Shown one piece after another: positions 2,229-54,557 of a stretch of DNA of 64,000 nt. This DNA comes from Anolis carolinensis. Its lineage: Eukaryota. The stretch spans positions 74,766,024 to 74,830,023 of the forward strand of contig NC_085845.1 in assembly GCF_035594765.1 (NCBI RefSeq), written 5' to 3'. The position numbers and the translations under genes were made by a program. Position 1 is the stretch's first letter, and each line of letters begins with the position of its first letter. The notes beneath the pieces were generated by a model. That model saw only the letters and a program-made list of their open reading frames with translations. It searched no databases and was not told the DNA's origin.

Positions 2229-4229
2229 GTTATCATAGATCTGAAGAGCTAATGGCAGGCATAAGAAATTACTTCTAGTTTTGTCTTTGGCTATTCTGTA
2301 ACTGATATTTGTGTCATTTTTCACCCTTGATATAAAGGAACCTTCCTTACACCCACCCATGATTTCCCAAAAACAACAACATCAACAATATATTTTTGAA
2401 GATGAGAGGATTCCTCACCATATCACCTACAAACTGGAATATTTTCATCACTAACTCCTATGATCTTGTCACATTTATGAGGTAGCACAGGGTGATTTAC
2501 CAGCCCCCGTGGTGAATCGGCATGGCAGCAGGGCAATCCTGGCACCCTACCTCAACCATAGTGATGCTTCCCCATCACATGTGGGATAGCGTCACTGCGC
2601 AGCTCCTCCCCACACTAGCTCCGTTGTTTCCAGTGGAACATGGGAAGCCTGCCATATTCTGGACACAGAGTCGTAGGATGCTTGTGCCCAAGTTGATTGA
2701 TGGAGTCTTGCCAAAAGTGAGTGAGCATCCTGTGATGAGCGGCGTGGGGCTCCATGCATTAACTGGGATACAAGCGTCCTACAATGGCTGCGAAGACACA
2801 TATGATTAAATCCTTAGTGTAAAATAGGAACAACCATGACCTACTATGCAACAAAGCTAGACCATAATCTACTGAACAAAGGAGAAAAGACTTAATTGTT
2901 TTTATGGTCATGCCTATAGAGTAGATATATGTTGAAGAACAGGAGCATTGTATCAAACCCCATCCCACAACCCAGCTCTCCCCTGGTCACTGATGCATAC
3001 AAATTGCCTTTGGGAATGATGTTCTTTATCATGTATACAGGGCCTTCCATGTGCACACAGAGGTTGTACAAAGACTTTATGGGTGAATGAGTACAGGACT
3101 CACCAAAGACCTTTTGTTGCCTGATGCCAAGCAGCACGTGGGGTGCCTTCCCCGCAAGCCATTGTATGAAGCTCACATGAGACGGAATATTCCATACCTT
3201 TTCTCCACATCCATGGCAGTAAAAATAAAACAACTTACAGTTTTCTGCTCTTTCTTGATTCCCCAGATCTGCTCCTTGATAAAGTTTTCTTAGCTTATTT
3301 AAGAGCAGAGACATCACCAGGTTAGCAAATGGTCAGAGAGTTGGGTTTGTCATCACATTCCTAGTCTGCTGTTCTAAATACATTCATTGTGTGAACAGTG
3401 CCAGAGGACTGTTTCTACTTTATCTTGAACCAATGTCATGAATGGGTCACAGAGTGAAATGTAATCTTTTTTCAAAGCATCAAAATAAATATTGTTCAAA
3501 TATGAATTCCAGCTGGTTTATGGGCACAGGCTAATTTGTGGATGCTGTTTCTTCAAGTTCAGAATTTGTGCTGGATTGCACAAGACTTTTGCTGGGAGAA
3601 TAAGTCCTGATGGAAGTCACATGATGCAAAGTCCCTTGGTATGCTTGCTTAAGTTCTTGCTTTGTAAGACCCCTTTTTGTTAAGGAAGGTCCACTTCGGA
3701 TTCACAGACAAAACACTGTAAGGGGGGATCTTTCAATATTTGTTTCCCAAAACAACCAAGGTTCTTAATTCATTACAAAGCCATTTGTGTCTTGCATGAA
3801 ACACTTCAAAGTCACGCGGCATGTCAAAGCCTCTTTGCCTTTGAAGTCTTTGAAGTCTTCAAAACAGCCACTCTCTCAGATGAGGAAATGGGTGACTGGA
3901 AGCAATACACTTTAACTCCAGGAACAGTCAGGCAGATTGTTGTTTTCATTACCATGTTTTAAATGAGAAGCCTTAGCTTTCCCATGAAGGGAAGTGGAGC
4001 TGATGAGAAGAAGATGGGACAGGCTGGTGGAATCCATAACCTAGGTGGAGATGACTTCATCTAAATCAGAAAAGAGGACTCCACCCATTTTCTGGACAGT
4101 AATAGAGAATCTGGAGGGCTTTATGTCTCCACTCCTGGGTTCAGAGATTGAATTATCATCTATGATACATTCCCCAGACCAGCATAAACAATGCTTGTGG
4201 AAGGCCAAACCAATTCAATTCCTATAGAC

Positions 4230-4351
4230 CAGTGGTTCTCAACCTGTGGGTCCCCAGATGTTTTGGCCTTCAACTCTCAGAAATCCTAACTGGCTGGGAT
4301 TTTTGGGAGCTGTAGGCCAAAACACCTGGGGGCACAGGTTGAGAACCACTG
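4230..4351. mobile_element. hAT-like palindromic MITE
   Basis: TIR cagtggttctcaacct; 8-bp TSD ctatagac/ctatcgac. Confidence 0.9.
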
Positions 4352-6152: not shown

Positions 6153-7960
6153 CCCTTGTCGTGCTACCTCACACAAATGTTGTTGCAGATTTGAACTGTT
6201 TCATCACCAAGAAAGCACCTGTTGAATCTTTGCCAGACGTCCTTTTGTTACAAAAGCAATATATATTTCTGAATCCTGCCAGCTATGGTAGTTTCAGTAG
6301 CTGAAACACACAATTATATCCCCTAAATTCAGTGAGTTTATTCTAGTTGGTACTAAGGACCTCATCACAAAGGGGTAAGGATTTGTCACACATTGTGGTG
6401 AATCCATAGGGTTCCAGCCTGGGGGGCGTGGGGGGGGGGCGTGGAGAACCTGATGCTCCACGGCCAGCATTGCCTGACTTACCTGGGCCTCCATCGCAAG
6501 GGGCGAAGTGTCACCACCTGGTTTCCCTCCATTGATTCAATGGCAATACAGGAAGCCTCATGTGTTGCCGTTGTGGCAGTGTACACTGCTTTCTCTCTCA
6601 TTTCAGCATGGAGCCTGGCTAGAAGTACACATGCAATTTGTAATGGGCTCTGTATCGAAAGTGGCACAAATTAACCAGAAATAAAATCTAGGAGATAAAA
6701 GGTTACCCTGCCTTTTAGAAGCAATGAAAACCATCTGCAATGTAGGGGGATTGTTGGTGCACTCTGCCAGCATCAGCATGAGAGTGACAGGAAGAAGAAG
6801 AACACATGAGCATTGGTCATAAAGGAAGTAAACAGCAAAGAAATAGGCTGCTCATGGCTAACAAATATGGCCTGGCCTCCCTAGCCACTTGCTGCGTGAC
6901 TCTGGAAAAATATGCAGCTGCACTAGCAACCAATAGGATTCTGGCCAATGTACCCAGAGGCATATACACATAAATAAAATACACATTTTTTTAATATAAC
7001 ACAAAAAGGCACTCTATAGTCAAAGGAAAATAATAACTGGGGCATGGTGGAGCTGCTTTAATTTGTTAAAATTATTATTAAATCAAAGAGGTCTTCATGT
7101 ATAAACCTTTGTTAGCATGTTATGTGATGTGTTTAAAGTCTTTTCAAACAGACTGACATTCAGTGTGATATTGCTTAATGAGTATTTATCCCAGCAAACA
7201 AAATTTTGAGACACATTGCTCAATGAATGAAACTCTTTATCTTGGTCAAGGAGCATGACATCTTGGTCAAGGAGCATGATTCAGCTTCAAGACTTTTAAC
7301 CTAAGTGGCTGGAGGGAGATTTTGAGTCTCTGCATATATAATACTCTTGTACTCCATCAAAGGTAGCATTCATGTGCGAGATGAGATGCTCCAAGAAGTA
7401 TTATCATGAGCATGCAAAAAACTTTCTTTAAATGAGACCCATTTCTCATTTAATGGGTAGCCGAGCTCTTCTTTGCCATAAGGCTTCCCGTGTCCTTGTT
7501 TCTTTACCAGGATATAGTGAAAAGAGTAACAGAGAACCAGCATGGTGTTGTGGTTTGAGCATAGGACTAGGGCTCAAACCAGTGTTAAAATCCTGCTTAG
7601 CCATAGAAGATCTTGGGGAAATCACACTATTTCAGCCTCAGAGAAAGGTGAAGGTGAAACAGTAATCTAATGAACAGTGGAAACCCTCATCTCAATGTGC
7701 TCATTCTCAAATGATTCAATTATAAGAAAATCCATTGCGATTGTTCTTCAAGTCATGTGTGCATTCAAGTAATTTCTGATTTATGTTGACCCTAAGACAA
7801 ACCTATCATGCTATTGCCTCCCTCTGAGGCAATGAGAGTGGGACTTATCCAAGGACACACAAAGTCATAATCCAACATTTATATCACTATACTGGCTTGC
7901 AAAGCCCACTTATCATCCAGAAAAGAGAACCTTCCTCAATACCATTGCAGGAACCACTCC

Positions 7961-8900
7961 CCCCCTTGACTGATTGTCACCTTGTCATGGTGAGGGGGCT
8001 TGCATGTTCCAATGAACCTGTGGGCGTAACCACTGGAGTCATGCACTCCCAGAAGGGGCTGCGGGGGAGGTTCCAGATCAAGCGCAATCCGAAGACCTGA
8101 AGACTAATGATGTGTGAAAGGCTAATTGAGACATATACCATTTCCCCGTCTCAAATTCCTCTCCTTCCAAAGATCTGGCAATCTGTCCAGTCTCACAGAA
8201 AGAATAAACTCTCAACAGTCAGATGTCAGCCGAAACCAGATGTTCAAGGCTTTATTGATATAATTTACAACTATGTACAGATGCGCAGCTAACACACATG
8301 TCTCTTCTACAGCAGAATTAATGGCGACTAGCAAGGAACCTTATCAGTAAATTTAGCACCTCCCAAATTCCATTCTCAGTGACTTATGTCCGCTATGTCA
8401 GCAAACGGAAGCTGCATTCCTGTCACTCTATGCAGTAAATCATACCCTATGCAATTAACCATTCCTGTGCTGGAATGCTTACCGAAGCACACATATATTC
8501 ACTTTAACAATGAGTGAACATTTCACCCACTACAATAACAATTTCTCTGACAAAGACCTCAATGGCAGATTAGGCAGAGGATAACATGGTACCTGTTACA
8601 ACGGCTGTGAAGGCAAAAGGCTGCAACAGACTGGGGAGCCACCATCATTGTGTCAACCACGCCACTGCTTGGGACCCCACTCTGTGAAGACTGTGTGTTG
8701 ATTGGCTGTGCACTGACCTCCACACATTAAAAGAACTCATGCACAGGCGTCTTCCAAGTAACATAAAAACAAACCAACAAAAGTCCCATGGCAATCAGCG
8801 AGTGGCGACGGGGGCAGGACTGTGAAATCTGGAGGCCCCTAGTCACAGACTGGCACATGGGCAGTGGATATAGACTCAGTAACTCTATCTCAAGGTCTTG
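7961..8900 (+). mobile_element. RTE-clade LINE 5' UTR fragment, interrupted by a solo LTR
   Basis: caccttgtcatggtgagggggcttgc 5' motif; colinear with 33925-33590 once 8105-8552 is removed. Confidence 0.8.
8105..8552 (-). mobile_element. Solo LTR (448 bp)
   Basis: 5-bp TSD aagac (8100-8104, 8553-8557); minus strand starts TGTCA; AATAAA on minus near 8251-8256; other end degenerate (TA instead of CA). Confidence 0.75.
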
Positions 8901-13160: not shown

Positions 13161-14314
13161 TTACTTACTTACTTAGGCGATCCCTCGTAGTTCGAGGATG
13201 ATTCTGTTCCACCTTGGGGGTGTGTTCGTAGATGGCTGAAGAGACCTATTCTTGATCTGCATGTTCTCCCACAGTGAGGACATCGGTTTCCAGGCAGAAG
13301 GCGGTCCTGGTCAGGGTTGGCTTGACGGGCCTTCCTCTTGGCACGTTTCTCCCTTAAGCCCTCCATTTGTGCCTCTTTGAACTCCGCAGCACTGCTGGTC
13401 ACAGTTGACCTCCAATTAGAGCACTCAAGGGCCAGGGCTTCCCAGTTCTCATGTAATTACACGTGCCAGAGACCGCCGTGATGTGCTTCTCACAAGAGCC
13501 ATGACAGGTGCTGATGACTGCTGGACAGACCACAGGTTAATCCAATCCACTATGGCTATCAAGATTGTCCCCAAACGCAGACTCCAAGGAAGAAAAACAA
13601 GGCACAAAATGAACACCTGAGCCCTTCAGGAGCCCTCCAAACGAGCCCTTCTCCAAACAACCCTCAAAGATCATCTACCCACAGAACACCCTGAAAATGT
13701 TGAGGAACATTGGAATAAACTGAAGACCTCCATCATCACAGCCTGCGAAGAAACCATTGGATACAAAACTATGAAACATCAAGACTGGTTTGACGATAAC
13801 AACAAAGATATCCAACAGCTAATTGATAACAAAAGGAAAGCCTTCCAAATATGGCAGAGAGACAACAACTGTGCTGCCAAGAAAAAAATATCTATGTCAG
13901 TGCAAAAGCTGAGGTCCAAAGAAGGACCAGAGAACTCAAGAACATCTGGTGGACAAAGAAGGCAGAAGAAATCCAACACTTTGCAGATACCCATGATGCT
14001 CAGGGATTTTTCAAAGCCACAAAGATCATTTACGGACCAAGAAACCATGGCATATAGCCTCTACGCTCATCAGATGGAACCAAAATTCTAAAGGACAAAA
14101 CATCAATTGCACTACGTTGGAAAGAGCACTACCAGAACTTGCTGAATCGCAGCTCCAATGTGGCCGAAGAGACCCTCTCACAAATCCCGCAACAACAAAC
14201 CAAGGATGAACTTGCAGCACTGCCTAGTGTGGAAGAAGTTAGCAATGCCATCAGCCAACAAAAAAACAACAAAGCCAGCGGACCTGATGGGATTCCTGCT
14301 GAAATCTTCAAAAC
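13161..14314 (-). mobile_element. RTE LINE with 5' inversion (3' end on minus 13161-13451; EN-RT linker on plus 13452-14314)
   Basis: (TAAG)n tail; CPHCGRTCRSRIGLFSHLRTH zinc finger; KHQDWFD and KASGPDGIPAEIFK on the opposite strand; 11-bp TSD ggggaaaggcc. Confidence 0.9.
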
Positions 14315-14827
14315 GGGGAAAGGCCCAAAACTATGGGTAGCTCCATCAAAGCTACCTAAAACTTTACCATGATTGGCGAGGAAGCTTCTTGTGACGCTTC
14401 CTCACCACTTCAGCCATCAGTGGGGTGGGACCTCGGCCTGCGTCATGTGATGACATTCAGCAGGATCTATGGCCGAAGAGGAGTAAGGGGATAATTTACC
14501 CCTGTGTAATGAGGTAGTAAATGTTACTCCTGCCCCTTGTGAAGAAGGATCAATCATATTCCCCCAATGGGTTATCCATTTTCTACTATGTTTTACCAAC
14601 ATAATGAAAGAAGAATATACAATTCCATGGCATCCTTAAGCTGCCCCACCAGATCCAGCAGGAATTTGTGGAGCTTACTGAGAATCCTGCTGTGGCTTTA
14701 CACTATTTATTTATTTATTTACAGCATTTTTACCCCGCCTTTCTCACTCGAGGGGATTCAAGGCTGCTAGAATACATCCATATACTTCAAGTAGCCACAC
14801 TTTTTCTGCTCTATGTTTTTATTCCAA

Positions 14828-31000: not shown

Positions 31001-31440
31001 ACTATGCAGATAATTACATAGGAAATCCTGGAACCAGTCAGAGGCCCGGATGGCGATTACACAAACCAGAGCACAGAGGTGAATTAAGAGCTTTCTTTTG
31101 CACACTTTTGTGGGATTTTGTTGTCTGGCTACCAGTTTGAACCTAGCTTTGAACTACATTGAATGTTCAGTATAGATAGGGCCTAAGTTGTTGGAGAGTG
31201 AGGGAATGTGCAGCAACATGTCCAACTATTTTCCTTAAACTGGATGTGCTGCAACAGACACTAGCAGGGACCTTTAGACCTCCCTGGGATACCCTTGTAG
31301 ATGAGGTCCTTGCAGGACACTCTGCTAAAAGAAAATACCTCATGAATACACTCAGGCAACCTGGAAATGTTTAAAACCTAAGTTTGGGGGAACCTTGGTC
31401 ATTGCATATCTATCTTGTTTGCTGTGTCATAATAAAATAA

Positions 31441-31905
31441 TAAAAACTGTGCGGTTTTGTGGCATTGTATATTTCTGCCGCTTCTGTGACTGTTCATTTG
31501 TATTTTGATTCTGTAGCCCACTTGTCGATGGGTGTCCAGAATCAGCAGCATCCACCACAGTCGTTTTTATCCTAGGCGATGACTGAGCCAGTATAGACTT
31601 CGTTTTGGTTTGTTTCTCCATAATGCTAATGAGTTAGGTGCTCTTAGTACCACTCCTCAACTGAGACCGCTCTGGCTTGGTTGGACCTGCCGGTAGTTAC
31701 ACTACTGCCAGCACAGCTCTCAGCATCTTTGGAACAGTTAAGCCCCCCCCCCCCCCCCCACCACCACCACAAGGTGGTACCCATTGAATCCTAAACACTT
31801 GGGAAGTGTTCAACTTGCGATTTTGTAATACAAAATCCAGCATATATATCTCATTTGCTGTGTCATACTATGTCTTCGTGTCAAAATAATAATAACAACA
31901 ATAAC
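31441..31905 (+). mobile_element. R4/Dong-like LINE: inverted 5' end (minus 31441-31788) joined to 3' tail (plus 31789-31905), next to an older tail at ~31340-31443
   Basis: ORF start MEKQTK...QKRQKYTMPQNR; tail tttgctgtgtcata...(TAA)n. Confidence 0.65.
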
Positions 31906-33290: not shown

Positions 33291-33532
33291 GTAGTAGTTG
33301 TTGTTGTTGTTGTTGTTATTATTATTAGGTGAGGTTGAGATAGTATAAATCTGACCACACCATTGTATTTAATCAATAGGATGCAAGCTATATTAATAGA
33401 TTTAATTCAAATAGATTTAAATGCAAGTATTTAGATGCTGCCTTTCAGGACAGGCATCCTTCTAAGGACATTTACTAGTAAGATAACACATAGATTATAA
33501 AACTGTTATTAGTAATTGTCCATAAGACAAAT

Positions 33533-33925
33533 CTTCTTCTTAGGAGATTCCTCGTAGTTCGAGGATGATGGTCTTCCAGTAATTTTTCTTGGAGGACGCC
33601 TGTGCGTGATTTTTTTTAGTGTGTGGAGGTCGGTGCACGGCCGGTCAACACAGTCTTCACAGAGTGAGGTCCCAGCAGTGGTGTGATTACACGAGAGTGG
33701 CTTCTCAGTCTGTTGTAGCCTTCTTCCGCCTTCACAGCCGTTGTAACATGTACCATGTTATCCTCCGCCTGCTCCGCCGTTGAGGTCTTTGGGTCTTCGG
33801 ATTGTTCTTGGTCTGGATCCTCCCCTGTGGCCACTCCTGGGAGTGTGTGACTCCGGTGGTTGTGCCCACAGGTTCATTGGAACATGAAAGCCCCCTCACC
33901 ACGACAAGGTGACAATCCATCGAGG
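33533..33925 (-). mobile_element. Non-autonomous bipartite RTE derivative (5' UTR fused to 3' tail)
   Basis: 5' part matches 7961-8760; 3' end catcctcgaactacgagg matches the RTE tail at 13175-13200; perfect 40-bp TSD. Confidence 0.9.
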
Positions 33926-34164
33926 GATTATAAAACTGTTATTAGTAATTGTCCATAAGACAAATACATAAGGCACAACAGTATGTCCCACTCAATCATA
34001 TAAAACTCAATCAGATCAAATGTCAGTGTTTCCAATTTCTTTCACCACATCAACTGAATATGGTCTGGAATAACATCTTGATTAGGATTTTGGTTCTATC
34101 AAGTGTGCAAATTGGTAAAATATGCCATGCCAACAGCTGCAAATTCATGTATACTATTTACACT

Positions 34165-34170
34165 TTTATT
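34165..34170 (-). terminator. Putative KIT polyadenylation signal AATAAA
   Basis: Plus-strand tttatt at the end of a U-rich UTR block, just distal to the miR-221/137 site. Confidence 0.7.
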
Positions 34171-34310
34171 TAAACTCTTCAACAATACATCTTTCAGACT
34201 TCCACATATTTATACATACTTTCATTGTGCATATATATATATATGTTTATTTATATATTTATAGAAAAATATTTTTTAAGACTCAAAAGCCTAAAGGAGC
34301 TGAGAAAACA

Positions 34311-34322: not shown

Positions 34323-35290
34323 TTCAGCATTTACATAAAACAATCGGAGCAATAAAACAAATCTGAAACTATTAAGCCGCTCTGTAACCAAGTAGTCAAC
34401 AAAAACAGAATTATAAAAATATAACTTTTCAGATTATAGGAAAAACATTGTCTACTCAAGTGCCAAAGAAGTACCATGATGTCAACAATTATTACAAGTT
34501 TTTCTCTTATAGCCGCAAAGGCCAAAAGGTTTTGCATTTATTTAAGATGGTGGTTATCATAACCTTCAAGGAGGGTTGGGGGAAGAAAGCATACTAGTCA
34601 TATTTTCACCTTTAATATATACATATACTGAATATGTGGATGGAAGACGGACTGATGCATACCTTTGGGTCCTGTCACCTATACCTATCCAGAAGGTGTA
34701 AAGTGGCCCAGGAGGTGTACAGTTAGTCACACAAAATCTCTTCTACACAACTGTGAACTTTAACTGTGTAATGCTCCTACCCGCACATGTGAAGCATAGA
34801 TATGAAGAACCCTATAGAGTTGATTCAGATAATAGTCAGGGCACTGTCAGCTGTTACAACCCTCCTCCTTGCTGTGTTTCTTGCATGCATACACTAATGG
34901 GTTGCAAGTGAAAACAGGTACAGAATGACTCTAATCCAGTGCACAGTTCTGATAATACACACGGAGCTTGGAAAACACAGTCTTCCCCATTGTCAGAAAA
35001 GGAGGAGAATCTGCATGTGCAATGAGAAACGTGACAGGCAAAGGGAATATTTCTTTTTATAGGGGGGAGAATGGAAAGCCCCTGCTTACATGGAGCTTGG
35101 GTCAAGCAATGCCCCACAAATTTCAGCGAACTTTTGAAAAGTGCAATGGTGTAAATGAATCCAGTGTAAGTGCCTACATTTAAGAAAGGGGGGGGGGCAT
35201 ATTTTTGGAACCTTAACCCCAAATAATCTGGTAAAATACATCACTCTCGGTCAGCAAAAGTTGGTGATGTTGGACATAATTTGAAGCTTC

Positions 35291-35300: not shown

Positions 35301-36264
35301 TGTTTAAGATGAACTTTCATTTGGGTCTACAGTTGCTCAATAAAGTTGTATTTGGACACAGTTACATCTAACAATGTAAAGCCAACAAGAGAAGTTGTTA
35401 CATTTGAAATGTAAATCACAGGAGTCCTAAAGGGAAGCTACACTGAAAATATACAGATATTTTAGCGCAAGTCTATTACTCAAAAGATGATCTGTGAGAT
35501 TTTTGTTTATTGATTGATAGGTCCTTATAGAAAACCAAAGAGTATTCAGACAATATGGCAATATAGACACGTAACTCCTAAAGCCATTAGCCTGCATTTT
35601 GTGCTAACCTGAAAATCCAGTAACTTCAAAATTTACTTCTTTATCTATGTTTCTATCCATACAGCAGTCAGTACTACAGGAAAACATGCCCTTCCCAAAA
35701 TGCGGCCATGTGAGATTTTGTTCTATTAAGCTTACAGTTACATGTACCCAAGATATGCTTTGAGTACAGTAAGAAAATTATTTGACTGTTCTACATTTAT
35801 ATATATATACACACACAAAATAATAAAATATGGACTTTTTTGGAAATACATAGCTCACAGCTCTCCTAATCAGACAATTAGAGCTACGTAAGGTACATAT
35901 CATAGTTCCTGTTGTGATACAAGCAGCCGTATCTTCACCAGACCTGGGAACTACTAGGATGTTCTCCATCAGTTTATGATGGTACATATTTGTCCACTTG
36001 AAATTAGCCATGCAACAGTTTATCTTTATTTCTCAATATATGTCGTTAGAAATAGGTACACTGATTGACCTTCCAGTGTGTATAATTGGGATAAAAGAAA
36101 TATACTGGGGCCCTTCTGCAACATCACAAAATATTGGAGTGTGTGTGTATACAAATGGGAACATAAGCATACAAAACAAAAGCTTGGAAATTATCTTGTT
36201 CCCTTCTTATATATCTTCTGCCTCAACTGGAAAATGCAAACAAGATGGTTATTACCTGTTATAG

Positions 36265-36399
36265 CAGTGGTTCTCAACCTGGTGTCCCCAGATGTTTTTG
36301 GGCTACAACTCCAAGAAATCCCAGTCAGTATACCAACTGTTAGGATTTTTGGAAGCTGAAAGTAAAAAACATCTGGGGATCCCAAGTTCAGAACCACTG
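36265..36399. mobile_element. hAT-like palindromic MITE in KIT 3' UTR
   Basis: cagtggttct...agaaccactg; TSD tgttatag/tgttacag. Confidence 0.88.
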
Positions 36400-40872: not shown

Positions 40873-41091
<219 letters not shown>

Positions 41092-42322
41092 TTAAGAATT
41101 ATCCCATACTATTTTATGACAGTAAGATTGTCACAAGCTAAAGATTTTTAGCCAATGATCCATCTGCCTTTGAATAGATTAATCAGTGATTAATGGTATT
41201 TGAACATATAGATTTCTCATTGTACTCAAGGATTCTGGATTCACAGATTCAACCATCTACATCTTAAGATTCTTTTAAAAATGTACAAAAAGTAAACATT
41301 TGATTTTGCCATTTTATATAAGGGACACTATTTTTCTACACTACTGTATATAATAAGATTTGAGGAACCACAGATTTTAGTATCCCTCGGGGGTACTAGA
41401 ACCATCCCCAGTAGATGATGAGAACCTGTTGTGTGTACATTACCGAAATGGAGAAAGTTGTCTAACAGTTTTATTTTTCATTGAACAAAAACACCTCTCA
41501 TTTTAGATGTAATAACTGTAATTAATTATTCTTCATTCAGCTTTTATTTCTCTTAACAGGAATGGATCAGACCTTGGCCACACAAATCAGCCAAGGAACC
41601 AAGGACTGTTGGAATGATGTATCCTTTGCCTTTGAGGAAAAGCCTTAAGGAAAGGAAGATCAACCTTCCTCTCTCCTTCAAAGGGGCCACAGAAAGAGCT
41701 GGAAGCTGTGGTTCATCCTCCCTGTCTGAAAGAACAATCTTACAATACTGTGACTGTAGAATAGAAGGAAATTACAGCACAGTCTCACTCCACTCACTGG
41801 TCAAGAGACTAAGCTCACTGGATGAGGTGGGCTTAGTAATAGGGTTTGTTTTCATTGTGAAAATTTGCTTTAAGCTGCCTTGAAGATCATTCAATAAAAA
41901 GGCAACATATAAGCCTCCTATGTAAATACTTCCTAAGTGTTCTTAACTGGAAGCCCTGACAGTTAAAATTGGTTCTCACTGATTTATCACTGCAGCCTTT
42001 GTTGATGAGTCTACCAATTAAATCAATTACAGTTTACAGCTCCAATTATTGTACAGCCCACTGAGAAAGTGATCACTATTAGAGTACAAGGAGCTACAAA
42101 GATTCCTTATCGTAACAACCCAGATGATACTACCAAGGCAACACACACACACAGAATAAAATTCCTTTGGATGTATTGTTGTGACCTTACATTATTGTCT
42201 CTTAAGATCCAATTTGATATCATGGAAGACATTTATTTTTGGCCTGCTTCAATGAAGAATTATTTGTCTTATGTCTCATAAACTACTCAAATTATGAAGA
42301 CGGCATATTTTCAATTCAACTA

Positions 42323-42644
42323 CAGTAGAGTCTCACTTATCCAACACTCGCTTATCCAACGTTCTGGATTATCCAACACATTTTTGTAGTCAATATTTTC
42401 AATATATGGTGATATTTTGGTGCTAAATTCGTAAATACAGTAATTACTACATAGCATTACTGCATATTGAACTACTTTTTCTGACAAATTTGTTGTCTAA
42501 CATGATGTTTTGGTCTTCATTTGTAAAATCATAACCTAATTTGATGTTTAATAGGCTTTTCCTTAATGCCTCCTTATTATCCAACATATTCACTTATCCA
42601 ACATTCTGCCGGCCCGTTTATGTTGGATAAGTGAGACTCTACTG
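42323..42644. mobile_element. Tc1/mariner MITE (intron 17)
   Basis: Same TIRs; TA TSD. Confidence 0.92.
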
Positions 42645-43564
42645 TACATGTAATCTAAAGGCCCTTAAAAGGTTTGACAAGTGTGACAACCCACAACATT
42701 TTAGCAATACCCACAGAAAAGTAATCATACTATAATCAGACAGATTATGAAGATTGCGGTCCTCTTATTTATTCAGCCTTGTTTTATTGTATCCTTTCTT
42801 CCAACTTTTAGGTTTTATTTGATTAAAGAAAATGTAACTTACATCTCCATAAATATTTGGGTTTTTGTACTATAAAGTTGAAAATTAAATGCCTAAATCC
42901 AATGGTTAGTCATTGAAAGAGGGGACCCGTTGAGATAATCAAGCTTATGTAAGTGCTGACTTGACAAGATGCTGTTGTTTTAATGGGTCTACATTTAGTT
43001 CAGACAAAAGGATCTTAGGACAAATAACTAGGTAATTAATAGTTTTTCTATTTGAATGAGATAATCTCAAACAACAGTGCCTTATGTCGCGCAACAAATA
43101 ATTTTTGAAACTAAAGGGACCTTCTGTAACAATTTTTGATACAGTGCATGTGTTTATGTAAGAGGTTATGTGAAAATGAAAATTAAGCTTGTAATGTGTC
43201 CTCCTTTGGGCTATACTAAATTACCACTCCTTTGAACCACTTCTGGTACTTTTCTAAAAAAAAAAAAAAGACTAATACTACTGCGGTCAAGATATTCAAG
43301 AAATGCCTCATCTACTTTTTCATATTGCTATTACAAATTCATTTTCTGCAACCTTATGGCAACCTTTATAGTTTAAAACCGATATCTAATGGCAAGACTG
43401 GGATAGACCTAATGAATCAACTGCTGAGTGGTAAGTCAGCATTATGTAAATCTTACAGAATCAAAAGGTCTCCTGTAATTGGGTTCCAGCCTTGAAGTGT
43501 CATGGGTTATCAAACCCATGACACTTCAAAGGGCCACATGGGTGATTTCACCAAAGTTACTGTG

Positions 43565-44000
43565 ATGTTGTCGAAGGCTTTCATTGCCAGAATCACTGGG
43601 TTGCTGTGAGTTTTCCAGGCTGTATGGCCATGTTCCAAAAGCATTCTCTCCTGAAAATTTGCCCACATCTAAGGCAGGCATCCTCAGAGGCTGTGAGTTA
43701 TATTGGAAACTAGGCAAGGGAGGTTTATATACTGTATCTGTGGAAGCTCCAGGGTGGGAAAAATCTGACTATCAGTATTTAAAAACTCTAAAGCCAGGAC
43801 AGTAGATAAAGAACACTCTGAAACCAGGGGAATTCCAGACATGAAACAATTGGGGGCAGCTAACACCTCCCAACAAAGGATTCCCCCAGGCAGGGATCAG
43901 CTATATCTTGAAGCTGCAAGGCCATTAAAGGCTAATCGAGGTGGTTAATTACAACATTCACACTTGCCTCCAACAGACAAGAGTTCTTTCTCCCACCCTG
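43565..44000. mobile_element. Penelope-like element with inverted halves
   Basis: tgttgtcgaaggctttcat end and degenerate hammerhead on minus; plus-strand pLTR segment ~43785-44000. Confidence 0.8.
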
Positions 44001-45535
44001 TTTTGTTAGGTGACCATGCAATAAGTAGCTGCTGGGAAGGAAGAGTATGGAGTGTTGAGGTGGACGCTGACTGGTGGAATGTTTGAGGAGATTTGCATGA
44101 AATTGACATCTAATTAATGACAAATGTAAGTTCAGATGGAGAGGTGGACTGGTTGTAGCCAAGGATTTGAAAAAAAAATTGCAAGAAGAAAAGGGAGTTA
44201 AGTTAGACTAGAATTGGAGTAAGAGAAATGAGTTCAAGTTGATTGATTGGTGAGGGTCTGATTTAGCTTGAAATAAAAGGTATTTTAAAGGTTATGTATA
44301 ATGCTCTGTATTTTTATGTTTAAATTCTGTAACAAAGATTTTGTTTTTACATACTTTGGCTTCTGGAATTATCATTCTGAGAATCTGGTTTCAGACAAGG
44401 TGTCTGTGGAGGAACTGTTGAAGGTGGGATAAAAGCAATATAAATCCTCATAGAAACTTTGAGGGCATTTAGATTGATCCCACAGAAGGCAGCCAGGATG
44501 AATTCCTTAAGCATAGCAGATATGGGATCAGGGAAAGCTCCCACATTGCAAAAGGCTTCACATTTGGTGGGCTTAATGGTAAAGACTCCTATATTTGGCC
44601 AAAGTAGTGGAATGGTGTGAGAGAAATCCTCACAGTTGGTGGGACTGGTGTGATTGCCCAACTGGAAAACTCCACATTTGATGTTTTCAGTGGTGGATAT
44701 AAGCACCAAAGTTACCACTGTGGAGTACAAGAACTTGCTGTGCTGGTTGCAGAAAGCAATTTGCTTAACTGCTTCATTTAACTGTATGAAGTAGGATCTC
44801 TGAATTAGAGCTTCAAGCCATATCTTTGATCACGCAAAGAGGAGCAAATCTGTTCTTGTCATACTTCGAGGGAGACACTGCCTGCTGTCACTTTCCAGAG
44901 TGATTGGGAGGGCTCCTTAGCATCTGCTCTGAGATTATGCCAGACACAATTACAGGACATCTTCTTCCCCTTGTTGTTAACAGCTGCAGCTAAGCCCTCT
45001 TTCATGCCATAAAACATCAGGCAACTCAGGACACCAAAACCCCTTAATTTAGACAAATGGAGAGCAATTACTTACTGCCCACCTGCAAGCTGTTGTCTTA
45101 CGCTTAAAGAAAAAAAAAGCCCCAAGGATGGAGTTAATTAGACTGAGGCTGGAAATTAAAGCTGGTGTCTCAATGCAGTTTCTCAGCACATGGATATGCT
45201 ATTGAGGGGGTTTCTTCCTAAATTTGCTAGTTTTGTTTGTCAGATTCTTTATCTCTGCTTAACTGCCTGCATCTCATAATGAAATCTGCAGTAGAAAAGT
45301 AGTGGCAGCAAAAACAGATCTAAAAGGAAGGCATGCAGTCATCTTTGCTTGAGCCCTGGATGAGACGGATCTTCATTATCTCTGGAGATGGTTTCAACGG
45401 TGTCCCCACCTCCAGTACACAGGAAGAGATTATAGCTTTATTACAGTGATTTAGCTGAGAGGAAGTTTATTTGAGGGGAGGCCATTTGTAATGAACAGGT
45501 AACATAAGGAACCTACTTCATATCTTCTGTTAGAA

Positions 45536-45868
45536 CAGTAGTAACTAACCTTTTTTTGACCAGGAACCACTTGATCAGGGACCACTTTGACCAGGGACCA
45601 CTCTCCAACATTAGTACCAAAAGGATTACGAATCAGTTTTTGGTCAACATTAGATTCAGTTTGGTTATTTGGGGTGCTGATTCAGAAAATTGCATTGGAT
45701 AGACCACATCAGCTCTAGTTTATGATACAAAACATATGCCATCCATCCAGTAGTTGTTATCTGCTCACCCACAGAAAACCATATTTAATAATCTAGAGCT
45801 GATTTTCCGCACATGTCTCGCAGACCTTATTTTAGGTCTCACAGCCCACCAGTGGTTGGGAACCACTG
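45536..45868. mobile_element. hAT non-autonomous element
   Basis: cagt...actg ends; perfect 8-bp TSD tgttagaa. Confidence 0.85.
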
Positions 45869-45972
45869 TGTTAGAACATCCAGGCCATTTTGCTTCCACT
45901 GCCCACCTCCATCCCCATTCTGTGCTTTCTAGGCAGAGCATTTTTTGTATATATAATTTTTAAAGGCCATTA

Positions 45973-46200
<228 letters not shown>

Positions 46201-53553: not shown

Positions 53554-53721
53554 TCACATACATACATACATACATACAAACAATGATACCTTGACTTAAG
53601 AGTTCAATTCATTCCATGGCTGAGCTCTTAACTCAAAATGCTCTTATCTTAAAGTAAACCTCTATTTAATGTTCTTAAATTGAGATGCTCTTAAGCCAAG
53701 GTTCCACTGTACCCTTTAATA

Positions 53722-53856
53722 CAGTGGTTCTCAACCTGTGGGTCCCCAGATATTTTGGCCTTCAACTCCCAGAAATCCTAACAGCTGGTAAACTGGCTGG
53801 GATTTCTGGGAGTTGTAGGCCAAGACACCTTGGGACTCACAGGTTGAGAACCACTG
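53722..53856. mobile_element. hAT-like palindromic MITE (intron 12)
   Basis: TIRs; TSD ctttaata/ttttaata. Confidence 0.9.
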
Positions 53857-54557
53857 TTTTAATATGTTTAAGGAGGTTCACACAAACCTTCTGCCTTTTC
53901 TGTTATGGAACATTTCCTTACTTATGGAATTCATTTGGAAAGTTTCACTTCTACAGCAAAATGCAACATTCAATTAAACTACAGGATCATGGCTTTGCAG
54001 AGATAAGAGGAATGTCAATGACTATCTAAAGGATGGTGAACATTCCACATTTGTGGGTTTTATTTTTTCCCAAGGGTCACCCACTAGCAGGCACCAAACC
54101 CAGAAAAAAATGGGGGGGGGGGTTGAAACTTTTTTAAAGCGAATCATGAAGAATAATTCCATAACACAAAAAGCTCCATCGATAAACTTCAGTGGACACT
54201 CAAGACAGATAAAACTTCAGTGGGCACTCATGGGGATTTGGTTAATCAGTTAAAATCCATTAGTAAATCAGGTTATTTTAAAACCTGAAAATTTTCAGGG
54301 GGGAGGGGGGGACCCCTCACCTGCCCCCCCCCCCACTTTAGCTACAGCCCTGCCCACTAGGCTTCCATGGTCGAGCAGGAATTTGATCCTTGGTCTCTTG
54401 GGAGTAATAGTTCAGAACTCAAGGTAGTGCATTATAGCAGCTCTCTGGTTTACTGTATGATTTCACATTTTGGTCTTTGTGCTGGTTTGGGGCCCTACTG
54501 AGTGCCAAAACAAGAGACAATAACTGAAACAAAATGAATGGAAGCCTCAGAACTTAC

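Follow-up and report, generated by a model that had tools for sequence, protein, structure and literature searches.

The KIT-adjacent locus and its retroposon

The 64-kb stretch of Anolis carolinensis DNA analysed here (contig NC_085845.1, positions 74,766,024 to 74,830,023; hereafter the window) contains, at positions 33799–33926, a segment that an original prediction, made from the letters alone, had described as a double pseudoknot of the hepatitis delta virus (HDV)/CPEB3 type with a kink-turn (k-turn), placed at the 5′ end of an RTE retroelement and in sense just past the KIT poly(A) site. Short motif matching located KIT-type tyrosine-kinase exons at 40986–46152 on the minus strand, and AATAAA signals were found at 34170, 34251 and 34542, with a further poly(A) signal at 34616. 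The segment is also read on the minus strand and is thus in sense with KIT. It heads a short retroposon derived from a long interspersed nuclear element (LINE), which we call copy 1 and which is bracketed by a target-site duplication (TSD).

33532–33926, minus strand: copy 1, non-autonomous LINE-derived retroposon of ~395 nucleotides (nt), tail ...CCUAAGAAGAAGA, bracketed by the TSD
33927–33964, minus strand: upstream TSD copy, 38 nt, TTTGTCTTATGGACAATTACTAATAACAGTTTTATAAT, identical to 33494–33531
33494–33531, minus strand: downstream TSD copy, a perfect 38-nt match
33532–33581, minus strand: 3′ module from a LINE 3′ end, hairpin CCUCGAACUACGAGG with a degenerate (TAAG)n tail

Copy 1 consists of a 5′ leader of ~345 nt followed by ~50 nt of LINE 3′ end, and it carries no LINE open reading frame (ORF). 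The insertion is young because the TSD of 38 nt is perfect; the TSD may measure 39–40 nt when the flanking A and C are included. The 3′ module matches 13211–13172 of the window at 87.5%, where an ORF with a C2H2 finger ends. Its LINE type is that of P0078, with an HQDWFDEN linker, a reverse transcriptase (RT) and a C-terminal C2H2. When the 77-aa C2H2 C-terminus was compared with a representative library, mainly zinc-finger arrays were returned, and the LINE-type matches, P0078 and P0049, lay on short metagenome contigs that lack 5′ ends. One LINE type is represented in this part of the window by two head-to-head pieces with the architecture of P0078: at 13169–13402 (minus strand) the terminal part of a LINE ORF, carrying a C2H2 finger (CPHCGRTCRSRIGLFSHLRTH) and followed by a (TAAG)n tail, and at ~13450–14400 (plus strand) an endonuclease end, then HQDWFDDN and the start of the RT.

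Assembled contigs of four public runs, aligned at 80% likeness, show that copy 1 belongs to a very high-copy family. Alignments of these contigs end near 33539 and at 33926; in each DNA run, about 125 contigs stop at the latter position, and their consensus goes on with GG (plus strand). Because the consensus extends 2 nt past 33926, the family 5′ end is CCCCCUC, the 7-nt complement of GAGGGGG, and copy 1 lacks the first two C of the family P1 helix. Family tails read (TAAG)n, and a minority of the contigs run past 33582 into ...AAAGUCCCAUGGCGA, like copy 2 of the window (described below). A 62-aa ORF overlying the motif, used as a word-search query for further copies, gave no match. For the KIT-adjacent locus itself nothing special follows, copy 1 being one among thousands.

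The TSD and the family boundaries agree with the placement of the module at the 5′ end of its element. Two other parts of the original prediction are less well supported. The RTE label, which would call for a single ORF with an apurinic/apyrimidinic endonuclease (APE) and an RTE-type RT as well as an RTE-type 3′ end, finds no support here: copy 1 has no ORF, its last ~50 nt match a LINE with a C2H2 finger and (TAAG)n, and the module also heads two-ORF LINEs of the APE type. The element junction had also been taken to fall inside P1, as cleavage would lead one to expect; the family P1 is 7 nt, CCCCCUC, from nt 1, and copy 1 simply lacks its first 2 nt.

Anatomy of the HDV-like module

All helix coordinates below are read as RNA on the minus strand of the window. 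Helices are numbered as in HDV-like ribozymes, J denotes joining segments, L3 is the loop of P3, and the k-turn is divided into its C-stem, bulge and NC stem.

33796–33933, minus strand: HDV-like module as matched by covariance model R1 (80.1 bits, E 4.4e-18, model positions 1–154)
33922–33926, minus strand: P1 5′ strand CCCUC, family form CCCCCUC
33891–33897, minus strand: P1 3′ strand GAGGGGG
33912–33918, minus strand: P2 5′ strand GGAUUGU, extendable by U33919 with G33798
33799–33805, minus strand: P2 3′ strand ACAAUCC
33898–33911, minus strand: P3 hairpin (C)ACC-UUGUCGU-GGU, with ACC at 33910–33908, L3 at 33907–33901 and GGU at 33900–33898
33883–33890, minus strand: J1/4 CUUUCAUG, family consensus CUUGCGUG, C33890 directly after P1′
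33818–33882, minus strand: P4 with a k-turn signature near its base, UCC-AAU-GA-A-CCUGUGG (33881–33866) opposite CCACAGG-G-GA-GGA (33830–33818), both k-turn stems co-varying
33881–33879 with 33820–33818, minus strand: k-turn C-stem UCC with GGA, bulge AAU at 33878–33876
33875–33874 with 33822–33821, minus strand: k-turn G.A and A.G pairs
33872–33866 with 33830–33824, minus strand: k-turn NC stem CCUGUGG with CCACAGG
33806–33817, minus strand: J4/2 UCCAGACCAAGA, with the AC-N-AAGA motif at 33812–33806 and C33811 as candidate catalytic C

The strands of copy 1 follow one another as P1-P2-P3-L3-P3′-P1′-J1/4-P4-J4/2-P2′, which is the HDV order, with P1 and P2 crossing. Every base that had been listed for P1, P2, P3, C33890, J4/2 and the k-turn was found at its place. 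P1 is truncated in copy 1, as had been noted, by the first 2 nt of CCCCCUC; the G1.U wobble is absent and the first pair is C-G. With U33927 copy 1 could form one more P1 pair (U33927.G33892), passing from 5 to 6 bp. The same CCCCCUC/GAGGGGG type of P1 is present in three of the metagenome loci described below (L007, L025 and L031). The P3/L3 core is the same in all three copies of the module in the window, and J4/2 in copy 1 contains ACCAAGA (33812–33806). J1/4 of copy 1 departs from the family majority at 33887 and 33885, the majority base being G at both positions. With P1 short by 2 nt and two changes in J1/4, any activity of copy 1 itself would be less certain than that of its family.

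On its own, the copy 1 fold does not stand out. A loose HDV-shaped descriptor (P1 of at least 5 bp, P2 7/7 with G.U allowed, 3-bp P3 with a 7-nt loop, and a C near P2′) fits 28 places in the window, on both strands. The nested minimum free energy (MFE) of the 136-nt stretch is ordinary (z = −1.25), nested folding being unable to display pseudoknots, and no HDV-type match was obtained when the whole window was searched with Rfam at gathering score. A topology drawn on one sequence is not beyond chance; it is the comparative evidence from relatives that lifts the fold above it.

Covariation in relatives of the module

Relatives were collected from metagenome contigs with a core search pattern, CACCTTGTNRTGGTG-N(0-20)-GGGGGCTT, made of 24 bases from the lizard copy. 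A longer first pattern that also demanded GTTCCAAWGA had given 0 metagenome matches. The core pattern was found on at least 120 metagenome contigs, and about 100 of those listed are retrotransposon 5′ ends. Downstream of the module, the ORFs of these relatives include a CCHC ORF1, an APE endonuclease and an RT, as in two-ORF APE-type LINEs.

P2 always pairs the bases just before CACC with the bases just after AC-N-AAG-N (per-sequence table), and at least 8 complementary sequence types occur at these fixed anchor points. P1 is present as four types among the matches listed, across which its single A-U pair shifts in step on both strands.

P2 types 1–4: GGUGUCUC/GAGACACC; UUGUCUC/GAGACAA; GUGGGC/GCCCAC; UGGAACC/GGUUCCG
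P2 types 5–8: UGGAACU/AGUUCCA; GGUACCUC/GAGGUACC; GGUAUCU/AGAUACU; UGGAUUGU/ACAAUCCG (the last being that of the lizard copy)
P1 types: CUCCCCC/GGGGGGG; CCCCCUC/GAGGGGG; CCCCACC/GGUGGGG; UUCCCAC/GUGGGGG

Pairs were counted in an alignment of 68 sequences covering P2, P3 and the two P4 stems. In this alignment 80.3% of the cells pair, as against 30–43% when the partners are slid by 1–3 columns, both sides change in 20 of the 24 pairs, and 0 of 500 shuffles attain any of these measures. P3 (ACC-UUGUNRU-GGU) is present and invariant in every member; it was fixed by the search pattern and hence offers no covariation either way. Among the 33 distinct genomic copies of T1, the largest family listed, conservation on the upstream side sets in exactly with the opening nt of the 7-nt P1 (CUCCCCC). 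RNAalifold pairs the G run with CCUCCC of P4, a helix that draws on invariant columns only.

Covariance model R1 was built from 34 loci, none of them from lizard. It matches exactly three places in the window, all at full length (33796–33933, 31632–31798 and 7956–8093). Run on all fetched loci, R1 gave no members beyond the pattern-bearing ones. The nested double pseudoknot of HDV/CPEB3 type is borne out, since P1 and P2 both co-vary over about 70 relatives. Covariation in P1–P3 and the k-turn had been put forward as a check of the fold: P1, P2 and both k-turn stems do co-vary, whereas P3 is invariant. The recovery of copy 1 by a model made without lizard loci agrees with the fold.

J4/2 is conserved as well. 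Its AC-N-AAG(A) abuts P2′ in all families, and in one locus (L066) the motif abuts P2′ as C-N-A-A-G. The J4/2 C, which had been singled out as the candidate catalytic base, is kept in about 60 of 66 relatives within this AC-N-AAGA motif. The others have U, as expected of decayed copies. In full, J4/2 reads AGA-C-N-A-A-G-A, and J1/2 measures 1–4 nt, a length that the literature holds to be compatible with activity. HDV-like ribozymes are cleaved at the opening nt of P1, and short J1/2 spacers of 3–7 nt are active (PMC4908430).

About 14 of the 120 listed loci were excluded as a bacterial gene with a chance match to the pattern (L008, L010, L014, L035, L036, L073, L076, L086, L088, L111-113, L116 and L120). 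A conserved bacterial protein-coding gene has CACCTTGTAGTGGTG...GGGGGCTT (L008, L014, L076, L086, L088, L111-113, L116 and L120); because such a gene contains it, the core pattern alone is not specific. L046, L065, L070 and L075 were excluded as poly-G assembly artefacts.

The surroundings of the module differ among the relatives. Some module-bearing LINEs directly follow (TTAGG)n, the arthropod telomeric repeat. One example is L031:1723-1897 (minus strand), where the module comes after (TTAGG)n and heads a two-ORF LINE with a CCHC zinc-knuckle ORF1. In L025, L069 and L081, module-bearing two-ORF LINEs lie after a (GGTCA)n-like repeat. Such positions after simple repeats suggest repeat-targeting lineages. 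Several modules of the T2 type (L092, L097, L101, L105 and L109) have a common upstream sequence, ...TTCCTCCATGGATTAGGTCGTTTGACCTGTTCCGGCATCG..., without a clean P1 5′ strand; they lie within another repeat or entered it by repeated insertion. In many loci, among them L006, L009, L017, L101 and 31740–31761 of the window, the P1′ G run differs in length, between 6 and ~19 G, and is at times broken by A or T. This variation is likely due to slippage, which should permit register shifts of P1 and may confound assemblies, as in the poly-G artefacts of L046, L065, L070 and L075.

Two further copies in the window

The two other R1 matches in the window belong to an older copy and to a diverged homologue.

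7956–8093, plus strand: copy 2 of the module, older (R1 64.3 bits, E 3.6e-14), 85% identical to copy 1
31632–31798, minus strand: element 3, diverged module homologue (R1 76.9 bits, E 2.7e-17)

Both show compensatory double substitutions in P2 and in the k-turn NC stem around a common core. P2 of element 3 is UGGGUAC/GCACCUA, as compared with GGAUUGU/ACAAUCC in copy 1, with 3–4 pairs changed on both sides and one mismatch. An alternative P2 of GGUAC/GUACU was rejected for element 3, the alignment supporting UGGGUAC/GCACCUA. The NC stem above the k-turn changes from CCUGUGG/CCACAGG in copy 1 to GCUGAGA/UCUCAGU in element 3. The two agree in CACC-UUGUSGU-GGUG, in the CUU that follows the G run, in the AAU/AAA-GA bulge and in AC-N-AAGA.

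Copy 2 has CCCCCCC-UU upstream, and its J4/2 C is changed to U. Its leader is split by an insertion of ~446 nt at 8105–8550, flanked by AAGAC(C/T), and continues at 8551–8764. Unlike copy 1, copy 2 (7956–8764, plus strand) then goes on into ...AAAGTCCCATGGCA, probably the ORF start of the parent LINE. The element 3 module heads a short element of ~387 nt (31451–31837, minus strand), and its P1′ contains a 19-nt G run. This short element is flanked by two partial copies of another very high-copy repeat, maybe as a long target duplication (~31838–31890 as against 31405–31450). Apart from these elements, a palindromic repeat resembling a miniature inverted-repeat transposable element (CAGTGGTTCTCAACCTGTGGGTCCCCAGATGTTTTGG...) was observed at 53716–53862, 4221–4290 and 36256–36325, with arms that are 89% complementary and 21 nt apart.

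A k-turn signature in P4

A canonical k-turn signature, consisting of a C-stem ending in C-G, an AAU or AAA bulge, the G.A and A.G pairs and an NC stem, was found in copy 1, copy 2, element 3, T2 and L068/L100, covering both lizard families and two arthropod-type ones; in this class GA lies opposite GA. Both stems beside it co-vary, in the pair counts over the 68 sequences as well as between copy 1 and element 3, and the signature marked in the original prediction stands between two covarying helices. A second class of P4 loop has an NGU bulge followed by G.A and then A-U, with GA opposite UA. In alignment A3 (columns 102–107 and 181–190), a change of the bulge sequence between the two P4 loop classes goes along with a change of the 2n base. 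In the compact family represented by L025, P4 is a plain hairpin without a k-turn.

Judged from these alignments, the k-turn would be a frequent and not an obligatory feature of P4. Being optional, it fits P4 as the variable arm of HDV-like ribozymes, P4 being variable in that class (PMC3774820). Within the literature searched, no paper joined HDV-like ribozymes with kink-turns or with Anolis LINEs; some overlap with the RTE and R4 examples of Ruminski (2011) may exist. To our knowledge, a k-turn has not been described before in the HDV-like ribozyme class.

Interpretation of the module

We consider that the leader of copy 1 probably belongs to a widespread family of HDV-like ribozyme folds located at nt 1 in the RNAs of retrotransposons without long terminal repeats (non-LTR), and put the probability of this reading at roughly 75%. 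By analogy with R2, R4/Dong, RTE, Baggins and L1Tc, the element would need no precise promoter of its own. Any read-through transcript could fold P1-P1.1-P4 on P2-P3, and the J4/2 cytosine (C33811) together with the L3 loop would then cleave the chain just 5′ of P1. Such a cleavage would set the exact RNA 5′ end, with a 5′-OH and capped by a compact pseudoknot, which may also shield this end and aid translation. The k-turn near the P4 base would fold the long outer arm backwards or serve as a binding site for a k-turn protein. The sequences establish the helices, their covariation, the siting at family 5′ ends and the conserved C, while cleavage, the P1.1 pair and the part played by the k-turn are inferred. 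Effects on KIT read-through RNA are a matter of speculation.

Several observations weigh against this reading. The relatives were picked with a lizard-derived core of 24 bases, so that conservation of the core is circular and not independent evidence; the agreement of P1, P2, P4 and J4/2 around that core, by contrast, is not circular. In all families P1 opens with a C-G pair, without a G.U wobble. This wobble is common and not universal; its absence makes high activity less certain but leaves the fold unaffected. J4/2 is longer than that of HDV, with 3 nt preceding the C and 5 following it. The only possible P1.1 is a single reversed pair between G33905 (L3) and C33890 (J1/4), both bases fixed by the pattern; such a swapped pair is plausible, and L1TcRz has a single-pair P1.1 (PMC3185411). 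Searched with Rfam at E up to 10, the region 33500–34300 gave no HDV, CPEB3 or drz match, and the compact 86-nt relative in L025 gave no HDV-type match. Alternatively, the fold would be real and conserved and serve as a non-catalytic 5′ leader, by binding the element's own protein or a k-turn protein, shielding against exonucleases or acting in translation start, while an internal promoter fixes the 5′ end. In favour of this, covariation attests to structure and not to chemistry, neither the hallmark G.U wobble nor the customary orientation of P1.1 is present, and Rfam HDV-type models find no match. Moreover, the same 77 nt of L1Tc are an internal promoter and a ribozyme (PMC3383444), so that a 5′ end at nt 1 alone is no proof of cleavage. 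Set against this is the HDV-like active-site layout (PMC4908430), with a 7-bp P1 at nt 1, a 3-bp P3, a 7-nt L3, a short J1/2 and a near-invariant unpaired C, followed by N-A-A, just before P2′. This layout cleaves in every LINE clade tested (PMC3774820), and we therefore hold the non-catalytic leader to be unlikely.

A different core pairing is more doubtful still. In this arrangement, the CUU(G) that follows the G run would join the (C)AAG preceding P2′ and close P4 as a single long nested helix, leaving no P1.1 and hardly any single-stranded J4/2, so that the module would be another P1/P2 pseudoknot or an inactive state. RNAfold does form the CUU(G)/(C)AAG helix in L025, L066 and L031, which also counts against an HDV-like core, and the fourth pair varies from G-C (lizard consensus, L025 and L066) to G.U (T2, L007, L031 and L071) and A-U (element 3, L024 and L097). 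In T1, however, which with 33 copies is the largest and best preserved family, the fourth position has G opposite A or A opposite A; the other three CUU/AAG pairs are invariant and so unsupported, and the conserved AC just 5′ of this helix would be left unexplained. Least probable of all, to the point of being negligible, is a chance resemblance, in which helices would have been sketched by eye onto the G+C-rich end of a repeat. It would accommodate the 28 descriptor matches in the window, the MFE z of −1.25 and the lack of an Rfam match, but it is refuted by the P1/P2 types, the pair counts and the R1 model: P1, P2 and the two P4 stems all undergo compensatory changes over lizard and arthropod-type families, and the independent covariance model reaches E 4e-18.

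A bolder proposal can also be made, which we advance tentatively and would not yet favour. The module may be a distinct, uncatalogued and active HDV-like subclass, characterized by a C-G first pair, a reversed single P1.1, AC-N-AAGA and a P4 k-turn. Unrelated LINE clades and elements resembling short interspersed nuclear elements (SINEs) would share it as a portable 5′ module, in arthropods as far as squamates. A function of the k-turn would lie in recruiting an SNU13/L7Ae-type protein or in folding the outer arm back onto the core, and the changes named would have let the module escape descriptor and Rfam searches.

Comparison with known systems

Cleavage at the 5′ junction by HDV-like ribozymes is an established feature of R2, R4, Dong, RTE, Baggins and L1Tc (PMC3774820). 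An HDV-like ribozyme at a LINE 5′ junction is thus of an already known kind, and the present family stands apart as a variant by a first pair that is C-G, a P1.1 that would be single and reversed, an extended J4/2, a k-turn in P4, its abundance in a squamate and its sharing across LINE types and short elements. LINE 5′-end ribozymes of this kind, including drz-Agam-2 of RTE, were reportedly studied by Eickbush in 2010 and 2013, and by Ruminski and by Sanchez-Luque in 2011. The module resembles them in its nested double pseudoknot, its P1 of ~7 bp from nt 1, its closing P2, its predicted 3-bp P3 and 7-nt L3, its variable P4 and unpaired J4/2 C, its location exactly at the 5′ junction, both in LINEs and in short elements derived from them, and its reuse by non-autonomous elements. 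It differs from them by a C-G and not a G.U first pair, a P1.1 that would be reversed, a longer J4/2 (AGA-C-N-AAGA), the P4 k-turn and the lack of an Rfam match. Because of these core changes, standard searches miss it.

Several LINE clades use HDV-like ribozymes to release their RNA from read-through transcripts of the host. With the module, one very abundant family of squamates and many of arthropods would join these ribozyme-bearing LINEs. It is also a clear instance of a single structured RNA module put to use in different retrotransposon lineages as well as in short non-autonomous elements. Leaders able to hold self-cleaving folds also have practical weight for gene-insertion RNAs, into which lizard LINE 5′ and 3′ untranslated regions are now built (PMC13708176).

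Compared with individual ribozymes, the module comes close to both HDV and CPEB3. The antigenomic HDV ribozyme has a P3 of ACC/GGU, a 7-nt L3 ending in CG-pyrimidine, and a J4/2 with C-U-A-A-G just before P2′. CACC-UUGUCGU-GGUG and AC-U/A/C-AAG(A) of the module are alike, whereas positions 2–3 of its L3 are UG and not CC, J1/4 starts with CU and not GG, which corresponds to the putative swapped single P1.1 pair, P1 starts with C and not G, and P4 is much longer and holds a k-turn. With CPEB3 the module shares a 7-nt L3 starting with UU (UUCACGU in CPEB3, UUGUCGU in the module) and, as predicted for the module, a weak, single-pair P1.1. The CPEB3 ribozyme is, however, a single-copy mammalian intronic sequence with G.U at its cleavage site, a C (L3)-G P1.1 and a short P4, in contrast to a multicopy retroposon leader.

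The P4 k-turn signature resembles Kt-7, the box C/D and U4 k-turns and Kt-23-type variants in its Watson-Crick C-stem ending in C-G, 3-nt bulge (AAU or AAA), tandem G.A/A.G pairs and NC stem, and the NGU-bulge class, with G.A and then A-U, resembles known non-standard k-turns. Unlike those k-turns, the one described here, recognized from its sequence signature, lies within P4 of a ribozyme-like fold.

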